From Lytechinus pictus (taxonomy: Eukaryota): DNA of 64,000 nt. Within the stretch, counting starts at the first letter, position 1, and every line of letters starts with the position of its first letter. The DNA lies in contig NC_087246.1 of the NCBI RefSeq assembly GCF_037042905.1, forward strand, positions 13,392,001 through 13,456,000. Direction: 5' to 3'. Shown piece by piece: positions 47,722 through 48,890 of the stretch. Under the pieces are notes generated by a model. That model made no database searches. It worked only from the letters and a program-made list of their open reading frames with translations, and was not told where the DNA came from. Made by a program: the position numbers and the translations under genes.

Positions 47722-48890
47722 ATGACTTCTCTGACTTCAAAGTACTTACAGGTATGTACATATTGATATTAATGGTCGTTTCTCTATAATAACAAATGTT
47801 ACTTCTTCCTTTTGGTTTTTCAAATTGGCTCAACTACACTGTAAAAATGATTGGGTAAAATTTTAAACAGCACTAGGGTAATTATGTGTCCAACCAATTT
47901 GGGTCAGTATTTTACACAAGGCGGGAAGCATATATATTGTCCAGTAAGGTTAATAAATAAGCAGCAATTACTTTAGAATGGGCAAAATTTTCATCCCACT
48001 GGATGAATAAAAATGCCCAAAAGAAATTCCCAATGTTGGTTGGACACATAAATACCCTTATGGATCATTTTTACCCAATATTTTTAGAGTGTAAAGAAAC
48101 TGTACAATTGAATATAGATATTAAAGCGCAGTGTGTTTGAAAGAGATTATATTTGATACTGATTCATGGCCTGTAGTCGTATGCATATTTTGGTTTCATT
48201 AAACTAATTGTGACTTCTTTTTCTATTTCTTTCATTTGTCAGCTTCCAGATGCTAACTCGTGTGATATTGGCAAACCAAGTCCACTTGCCATGTTAGCTG
48301 CAACCTGTCGAAAGATCGGCACATCACCAGGCGTGTCTTCTCGTCGAGTGCCGAGGATACCTTCACCACAACCCCAGCTCACTCCGTTGTCGACGACCTC
48401 GCCTGTTTCTACATCATCATCCTGTTCGTACCTTCCACCTACTCCACCACCGTCACCACACATGACATCGTCATATCCAGCGTTGTCGGTATCACCTGAG
48501 CCTACCGAGTTGTCAGCTCTCCGATCAGTTAGCCCGATCATCCCTGGTCATCAGCCATGCTACTATCCTCTTTATCAACCTGTTATGCGGTACTCTCCTT
48601 ACTCTACTACACCTCTATCAAGACCAAGAGTACAACCATCATCCATGAGCTACCATCTAGCTACCACTCCATACTCATCGTGTACTCCTGTGGTTGTACC
48701 AGTACCAACATTCAACCACACGCTTCATTCATCATCGTCACCACCCATGTTCGGGGTCTACCCTCATCATGACCAACCCATCCATGCTACGACGTCGTCA
48801 ATGAAGGTCCGCCCTACGAGGAATCAAAGATCACGCCGAGTGGTAATCAAGGATGAGGAAGAGGAGATCATCGATGTCGTATCGCTCTGA
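47722..48890 (+). CDS. Zinc-finger-less Sp5-derived Sp-box protein, copy 1 (exons 47722-47751 and 48243-48890; 225 aa)
   Basis: MTSLTSKYLQ|gtatgt...tgtcag|LPDANSCDIGKPSPLAMLAATCRKIG...RRVVIKDEEEEIIDVVSL*. Sp box present, no C2H2 fingers. Confidence 0.85.
47837..48091. mobile_element. CACT-terminus MITE (CMC/EnSpm-like) in the intron of copy 1
   Basis: ta|cactgtaaaaa...tttttagagtg|ta. The empty site (caacTAaatgaaac) is visible in the introns of copies 2 and 3. Confidence 0.85.

Follow-up and report, generated by a model that had tools for sequence, protein, structure and literature searches.

Organization of the locus

We examined a 64,000-nucleotide window of sea urchin DNA (Lytechinus pictus, NC_087246.1, positions 13,392,001 to 13,456,000) that contains three tandem copies of a gene related to the transcription factor gene sp5 but devoid of zinc fingers. 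The top protein matches of the window were L. variegatus and L. pictus proteins, which were 93% identical. Copy 1, on which most of this analysis centers, is intact and has two exons that together encode a zinc-finger-less, Sp5-like protein of 225 residues. Its features are listed below; P0031 is a finger-bearing protein that is described with the origin of the family.

47722..47751, + strand: copy 1 exon 1 (MTSLTSKYLQ, then a GT donor), from the sequence and the RNA-contig joint
47752-48242, + strand: copy 1 intron, phase 0, GT..AG, from the joint 47751|48243
48243..48890, + strand: copy 1 exon 2, 215 codons and TGA, after an AG acceptor (93% identity to Lytechinus proteins)
48279..48320, + strand: Sp box SPLAMLAATCRKIG, the sole predicted helix of the protein (hhalign to Sp5 P0031; AlphaFold2)
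48429..48461, + strand: YLPPTPPPSPH, paired proline-directed phospho-sites resembling a Cdc4/Fbw7 phosphodegron (family alignment A1)
48591-48605, + strand: RYSPY motif (family alignment A1)
48804..48839, + strand: basic patch KVRPTRNQRSRR, aligning with the arginine-rich stretch that precedes the Sp5 Btd box
48840-48890, + strand: C-terminus VVIKDEEEEIIDVVSL and stop (copy 1 translation)
48855..48890, + strand: tail EEEEIIDVVSL and stop (consensus of 21 distinct tails)
48981..49001, + strand: AATAAA signal and 3' end of the mRNA contigs, which stop at 49000/49001, just past AATAAA

The gene is expressed and spliced. Contigs from three RNA runs (X16, X17 and X1) carried the joint 47751|48243 with 0 mismatches, and no joint from exon 2 to a downstream position was found among the RNA reads or contigs. 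A six-frame scan of the whole 64 kb revealed no C2H2 fingers. Likewise, the copy 1 gene has no Btd box (C-x-C-P-x-C), and none stood in a coding context elsewhere in the window. The idea that splicing might reach zinc-finger exons hidden nearby was rejected, as the window has no fingers and no joints lead out of exon 2; nor were fingers found within 10 kb of the relatives in Strongylocentrotus purpuratus or Diadema. A Pfam search of the copy 1 protein returned no family at E <= 0.1, the Myc boxes and bHLH-zipper, C2H2 and nlz1 included. Serine, proline and threonine make up 17%, 16% and 9% of the protein, respectively, and the basic patch is probably a nuclear localization signal.

Two observations concern the surroundings of copy 1. 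Spliced RNA contigs reach 0.8-2.6 kb further upstream of 47300 (the region 47300-47748 and beyond), which represents either a very long 5' untranslated region or read-in transcription from upstream repeats. In all RNA runs, contig word depth was very high, at hundreds to thousands, over short parts of 47900-48099, within the copy 1 intron, and of 49900-50099. A repeat that is abundant and dispersed, or an element resembling a small RNA, would account for this depth better than the gene itself.

Copies 2 and 3

The two further copies lie downstream in the same orientation, and the third is interrupted.

52814..52843, + strand: copy 2 exon 1 (MASLTSKYLQ), from the RNA-read joint
53061..53708, + strand: copy 2 exon 2, intact, with every motif present (comparison to copy 1)
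59217..59246, + strand: copy 3 exon 1 (MAFLTSKYLQ), from the sequence
59464..59562, + strand: 5' part of copy 3 exon 2 with the Sp box, ending in an in-frame TAG at the insertion junction (sequence)
59561..62985, no strand assigned: 3425-bp insertion in the middle of copy 3, with a PC4-domain open reading frame (ORF) and an acidic ORF inside
62986..63271, + strand: 3' remnant of copy 3, with an in-frame stop near its start and with the basic patch and EEEEIIDVVSL intact

Splicing of copy 2 at the joint 52843|53061 was documented by 17 raw reads from stranded RNA data, which start at 13 distinct positions. In copy 3 the insertion takes the place of the middle 265 bp, TPPPSP included, and creates the in-frame TAG. 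Copy 3 retains exon 1 together with 32 codons at the start of exon 2, and the predicted product is a 42-residue peptide with the Sp box only. The insertion has no nucleotide similarity to the remaining window; its PC4-domain ORF lies at 60657-61022 (Pfam PC4, E = 5.5e-13) and its acidic ORF at 61271-61840. Three RNA reads span the insertion junction (with the loose end at the equivalent copy 2 position 53157), and the truncated copy 3 is therefore transcribed.

An initial annotation, made from the sequence alone, had described YLPPTPPPSPH, the basic patch and the C-terminus in copy 1 and had called them identical in all three copies. Each is present in copy 1 as described (48429-48461, 48804-48839 and 48840-48890), but the second statement applies only to the tail, which is the same at the protein level in copies 1 to 3 (48855-48890, 53673-53708 and 63236-63271). 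Relative to copy 1, the tail has 3 synonymous changes in copy 2 and 1 in copy 3, with 0 replacements. TPPPSP was found in copies 1 and 2 only, and the basic patch reads KVRPTRNQRSRR in copy 1 and KVRSTRNRRSRR in copies 2 and 3, a difference of two residues. The observation is thus confirmed in part.

Between copies 1 and 2 the ratio of non-synonymous to synonymous substitution rates (dN/dS) was 0.27, and the last 12 codons contained 3 synonymous and 0 non-synonymous differences. Copies 1 and 2 are under purifying selection.

Conserved islands in a disordered protein family

Approximately 40 relatives were found in Lytechinus, Strongylocentrotus and Diadema and in TARA Oceans plankton metagenomes, thus covering at least three echinoid genera. 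All of them lack a Btd box. Overall identity between genera was only 38-45%, but a series of islands was kept across the relatives: SKYLQLPD, GKPSPLAMLAATCRKIG, LPPTPPPSP, HQP..YQP, RYSPY, FGVYPHH, SSMKVR.R.RR and a terminal EEIIDVVSL. The motifs under study are the best-conserved of these islands. LPPTPPPSP and the tail were near-invariant, and in the family alignment (A1) all nine residues of the LPPTPPPSP block (9/9) were at least 90% conserved. The 21 distinct tails gave the consensus E-E-[ED]-Phi-[IV]-D-V-V-[S/T]-Phi-COOH, in which neither the D nor the V after it varies and the position two before the D is always hydrophobic. Conservation in orthologs was a check proposed in the initial annotation. 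The motifs are kept in the relatives, and the loss that would have spoken against it was not seen.

AlphaFold2 with the family alignment gave a pLDDT of 54 and a pTM of 0.14, with a single helix, in the Sp box (residues 14-21). The protein is thus predicted to be intrinsically disordered, and its conserved islands would therefore act as short linear docking motifs.

Since a protein of this composition might match short patterns by chance, chance levels were taken from 100,000 shuffles of the copy 1 protein. The generic Cdc4/Fbw7 expression, [LIVMP]-x(0-2)-T-P-x-x-[S/T/E], matched the real protein 3 times, with only LPPTPPPSP conserved, and matched 50% of the shuffles; such a match is therefore meaningless by itself. 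TPP.SP was matched by 1.5% of the shuffles, IDVV by 0.1%, the loosened tail pattern acidic-acidic-x-[IVL]DV[VT] by a fraction of 4e-5, and the pattern of a SUMO-interaction motif (SIM) by 2.8%. The real support for the motifs is their conservation. Pattern matching alone is weak for the degron, which is backed by conservation only; the tail patterns are the rarer ones.

A reading in which the resemblances are chance features of decaying, functionless gene copies would be in keeping with the broken copy 3 and with the non-specific FBW7 expression. Against it, the genes are expressed and spliced, dN/dS is 0.27, and the motifs are invariant among Lytechinus, Strongylocentrotus and Diadema while the remaining protein is only ~40% identical. 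We regard this reading as highly improbable.

Tandem amplification was also seen outside Lytechinus. In Diadema setosum (OZ188207.1, L003, 1552-18236), 3-4 tandem copies lie in 21 kb, and their Sp boxes, like their EEIIDVVSL tails, are nearly identical; the amplification is either common to this distant echinoid or repeated in it. TARA Oceans metagenome contigs (L004-L008, proteins P0011-P0022) come from an echinoderm with at least 12 distinct family proteins. Their genes are single uninterrupted ORFs with no intron between YLQ and LPD, suggesting intron loss or retrocopies.

Origin from Sp5

A phmmer search of 1.8 billion representatives with a single-sequence query, followed by a region-restricted query with the N-terminus, recovered family members only and no Sp or NET proteins. 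Sp5 was reached by a profile search alone. The same search yielded a second finger-less subfamily with members in S. purpuratus (XP_799924), L. variegatus, L. pictus and Diadema, whose C-termini read EE[FI]IDVVSV or EDIIDVVTV.

The informative Sp5 match was P0031/P0032, a 430-residue protein from an RNA contig. It is a bona fide Sp5, in which RRCRRCRCPNCQ occurs along with three C2H2 fingers, and it scored 0.98 against Sp5-like clusters on Atlas features. The N-terminus of P0031, DKFLQLPEE..KPSPLAMLAATCNKIG, was 59% identical to that of the family (hhalign probability 97.7%, E = 1.6e-12, 34 residues). Counterparts of the other islands follow: EMPPTPPAE for the family LPPTPPPSP, FGASLYHH for FGVYPHH and KLAARRCRR for the basic patch. 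The C-terminus of P0031 is DDEEEDEEEYVDVMS-COOH, with the tail EEEYVDVMS.

Canonical Sp5 (P0031/P0032 and S. purpuratus sp5) resembles the window protein in FLQLP and the Sp box, in PPTPP, FG..YHH and the arginine-rich patch, and in the extreme C-terminus, where Phi-[IV]-D-V-x-S comes after an acidic run. The two-exon layout with a short first exon is likewise that of canonical Sp5. The window protein differs in that the Btd box and the three C2H2 fingers (~110 residues) are missing, and it is half as long. In addition, the window gene is tandemly amplified and has TPPPSP where Sp5 has TPPAE. The primers with which S. purpuratus sp5 was cloned (PMC10765061) give independent support, as they code for MPKGEALARFLE at the N-terminus and for SEDEIVDVTSD, followed by the stop, at the C-terminus.

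Taken together, the comparisons indicate that the acidic Phi-[IV]-D-V-x-S tail and PPTPP are ancestral features of full-length Sp5. Since the tail and the TPP motif are already in the finger-bearing P0031, and the C-terminus encoded by the sp5 primers is similar, the motifs were inherited and not newly gained. The finger-less family is an Sp5 that has lost its Btd box and fingers, which lay between the retained modules.

NCBI applies the name 'transcription factor Sp5' to XP_799924 (P0027; S. purpuratus AAGJ06000006.1, L002, 10001-11102), a finger-less protein of 283 residues. This protein is not the product of the gene cloned as sp5 in PMC10765061, whose sequence begins with MPKGEA and finishes with IVDVTSD. 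Morpholinos, probes and annotations named 'Sp5' or 'Sp5-like' may thus touch different genes, XP_799924 being one example.

An alternative source for the family would be the NET proteins (Nlz/ZNF503/703 and Noc/Elbow), Sp-box adaptors or co-repressors. These carry an Sp domain and are thought not to bind DNA, and, as in the window gene, a phase-0 intron lies a short way upstream of their Sp box. The family RYSPY also recalls the NET motif RYHPY, and language-model features pointed weakly toward ZNF503-like clusters (score 0.72). The details do not agree with this origin. In NET genes 5-6 codons separate the intron from the Sp domain that follows, against 12 codons here; there is no Pfam nlz1 match; and the FLQLP that precedes the Sp box, FG..YHH and the tail are common to the family and Sp5 P0031, the acidic IIDVVS tail being absent from NET proteins. 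NET proteins have five core domains (Sp, Btd, an atypical C2H2, RYHPY and a Y-rich domain), and RYHPY is reported to be absent from Sp proteins. NET proteins keep the Btd box, one atypical finger and the Y-rich domain, all of which are absent from the family. Of the five, the family has the Sp domain alone, and its RYSPY comes close to R-[YF]-[HNR]-P-Y but does not match it, a likeness that may be due to chance, convergence or shared ancestry. Given the intron position and the missing core domains, membership of the NET family was rejected, leaving a functional analogy only, and descent from it is very unlikely.

The TPPPSP site

The optimal MAPK consensus is P-x-T-P and P-x-S-P. In TPPPSP both the T and the S are proline-directed, and they are spaced as are T58 and S62 of MYC. 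Full-length Sp5 P0031 has an E at the +4 position, corresponding to the variant of this degron class that is phospho-independent. The site is most likely a regulated double phospho-site of the MAPK/GSK3 type. The nine-residue LPPTPPPSP block is conserved beyond what a degron strictly needs. TPPPSP could serve as an Fbw7 degron, and Fbw7-dependent turnover is plausible, although we would put it at somewhat short of an even chance.

The resemblance to MYC box I and other Cdc4/Fbw7 phosphodegrons (LPTPPLSP) extends over Phi-P-x-T-P-P-x-S-P, with T and S four apart and both proline-directed. The window protein differs in having no other Myc boxes, and its motif descends from the PPTPP[A][E/D] of Sp5.

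The C-terminal tail

The tail is best explained as a docking peptide of the beta-strand type. Residues at -2, -1 and +1 relative to the D are hydrophobic throughout the tails, and a small S stands at +3, as in MYC and RbBP5. Its most specific known match is the ligand that WDR5 binds at its WBM (WDR5-binding motif) site, as represented by IDVVSV of MYC and VDVTS of RbBP5. The WBM core is [L/I/V]-D-V-[V/T]; in WBM ligands the I and V occupy two hydrophobic sub-pockets and the D makes an intramolecular turn (PMC13649712). An acid directly before the core is not essential, as PER2 binds the WBM site through TAIDVTG, approximately 80-fold more weakly than RbBP5 (PMC13649712). In MYC the motif is IDVV, and an older formulation placed two acidic residues directly before X-D-V ('AAXDV'). 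The family tail satisfies the core with I-D-V-V. The hexamer IDVVSV is exactly that of c-MYC, and VDVTS of S. purpuratus Sp5 is exactly that of RbBP5. The known ligands (MYC MbIIIb EEIDVVSV, RbBP5 EEVDVTSV, PER2 AIDVTG) share with the family the core [IV]-D-V-[VT]-[S] and upstream acids. They differ from it in that the family has I, L, F or Y and not an acid directly before the core, with a motif that always lies no more than 1-2 residues from the C-terminus. WDR5 is one candidate partner, to which we give roughly one chance in three.

The initial annotation had read these features as a history in which a newly gained Myc-like WDR5 motif took the place of the zinc fingers. Combined with a Myc-box-I-like GSK3/Fbw7 degron, this would have given an adaptor of short lifetime that connects the partners of the Sp box with WDR5/MLL. 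Several correspondences favor it: IDVVSV and IDVVTV of the second subfamily match the MbIIIb cores of c-MYC and N-MYC exactly, the TPPxSP spacing is that of MYC T58/S62, and the definition of the WBM core is satisfied. On the other hand, the finger-bearing Sp5 P0031/P0032 already has a YVDVMS tail and PPTPPAE, and sp5 ends in SEDEIVDVTSD, which leaves neither a replacement nor a convergent gain. In addition, neither Myc_N nor another Pfam family was detected, and the strict acidic-acidic-X-D-V form is unmet. This reading as a whole is improbable. As the motifs are ancestral Sp5 features that flanked a DNA-binding domain since lost, the replacement history is wrong and the motif itself is real; to this extent the annotation's interpretation is partly supported. 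A Myc-derived chimera was also considered and was rejected, as there is no Pfam match and the tail is present in Sp5.

As the initial annotation had noted, the tail also fits a SIM; the fit is as good as that to the WBM core. The SIM pattern (Phi-Phi-x-Phi or Phi-x-Phi-Phi with flanking acids) is satisfied by DEEEEIIDV, and a SIM, by beta-strand pairing with SUMO, would direct both Sp5 and its finger-less copies toward SUMOylated complexes of chromatin or co-repressors. The acidic run and the three hydrophobic positions (-2, -1 and +1) are the conserved features of the tail and form the exact Phi-Phi-x-Phi pattern. The SIM IVDLT of the RNF4/PIAS type is closely similar to the S. purpuratus Sp5 tail EIVDVTSD, and Daxx carries a C-terminal SIM. 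In RNF4, PIAS and Daxx an acidic run is likewise followed by Phi-Phi-D-Phi-Phi, which in Daxx is terminal as it is here. However, the SIM pattern is loose (2.8% of the shuffles), the D-V-V-S of the family is tighter than usual SIMs, and no cluster of acidic residues or phospho-serines lies downstream. A SIM requires neither the invariant D-V nor the small S/T at +3; these recur in the WBM ligands MYC, RbBP5 and PER2. We consider SUMO about as likely a partner as WDR5, and we hold the SIM reading as a whole to be equally tentative. The remaining probability falls to a partner other than WDR5 or SUMO.

Among such partners, a class II PDZ domain or LC3 was considered. V-S-L-COOH fits Phi-x-Phi-COOH, and the core of an LC3-interacting region (acidic-[FYI]-x-x-V) is fitted by EEEFIDV and EEEYVDV. 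Across the family and Sp5, however, the last residue is L, I, V, D or absent. The PDZ ligand was rejected for this lack of conservation at the last position, the tails ending variously in SL, SI, SV, TV, MS or TSD. At the anchor of an LC3-interacting region most members have I and not an aromatic residue, and only the F/Y variants fit. Both are quite unlikely. Searches of the literature found no paper on the Sp5 tail motif, an Sp5-WDR5 link or the finger-less family, and searches by accession number were empty.

A proposed role for the finger-less derivative on the Wnt/Sp5 axis

We propose that an internal deletion took the Btd box and three C2H2 fingers out of a copy of the Wnt-target factor Sp5 and kept the flanking modules, namely the N-terminus with FLQLP and the Sp box, the PPTPP phospho-motif, FGxYxHH, the arginine-rich patch and the Sp5 C-terminal tail. 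The resulting disordered protein would dock partners by short linear motifs. Having no DNA-binding domain, it would most likely act as a competitor or adaptor: by engaging the same cofactors as Sp5 off DNA it could modulate the output of Sp5 and Wnt, as Id or NET-family proteins do. We consider it likely that the family is a finger-less Sp5 derivative with inherited docking modules that acts on the Wnt/Sp5 axis, either as an adaptor or by competing for cofactors. The arrangement recalls competitor paralogues without a DNA-binding domain (the Id/Emc type, 'microproteins'), in which interaction modules are kept and the DNA-binding part is gone. It differs in having no dimerization domain, and competition would be for cofactors via linear motifs.

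Several points weigh against this proposal and against its extension to WDR5 and Fbw7. Pairwise alignment of the family tail with the Sp5 tail was not significant (E = 1.0), and their homology is one of position and pattern. The zinc fingers of the cloned S. purpuratus sp5 are assumed and not read from sequence. The FBW7 expression is non-specific in a protein so rich in S, P and T. For the tail, the strict WBM form [ED][ED][IVL]DV[VT] is unmatched by the copy 1 protein, which reads E-I-I-D-V, and the always-hydrophobic -2 position is explained by a SIM and not by the WBM model.

A more specific version can be built on the tail and TPPPSP together. Here invertebrate Sp5 would recruit WDR5 (MLL/NSL) by its WBM-type tail, and the finger-less decoys would titrate WDR5 and would be switched off by a MAPK/GSK3-Fbw7 phosphodegron, forming a buffer on Wnt/Sp5. 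This version is speculative and, in our estimate, unlikely. If it is true, sea urchins have kept tandemly amplified Sp5 decoys for >200 million years, buffering the Wnt/Sp5 axis that patterns the primary axis of the embryo. Sp5 is a conserved Wnt target, and sea urchin embryos require it for patterning along the anterior-posterior axis (PMC10765061). An expressed, conserved, multi-copy Sp5 derivative without a DNA-binding domain is thus a candidate natural antagonist or adaptor in the Wnt pathway, and the tail common to full Sp5 and the finger-less copies is a concrete handle on cofactor recruitment by invertebrate Sp5.

Other features of the window

Elsewhere in the window, the regions 14964-15995, 36859-37431 and 39361-40654, all on the minus strand, contain an exon of a zinc carboxypeptidase (Peptidase_M14) and a chromodomain-bearing integrase fragment of a long terminal repeat retrotransposon. 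Two near-identical acidic ORFs that start with ME[VE]QEEGEIPPSP lie in the same regions.

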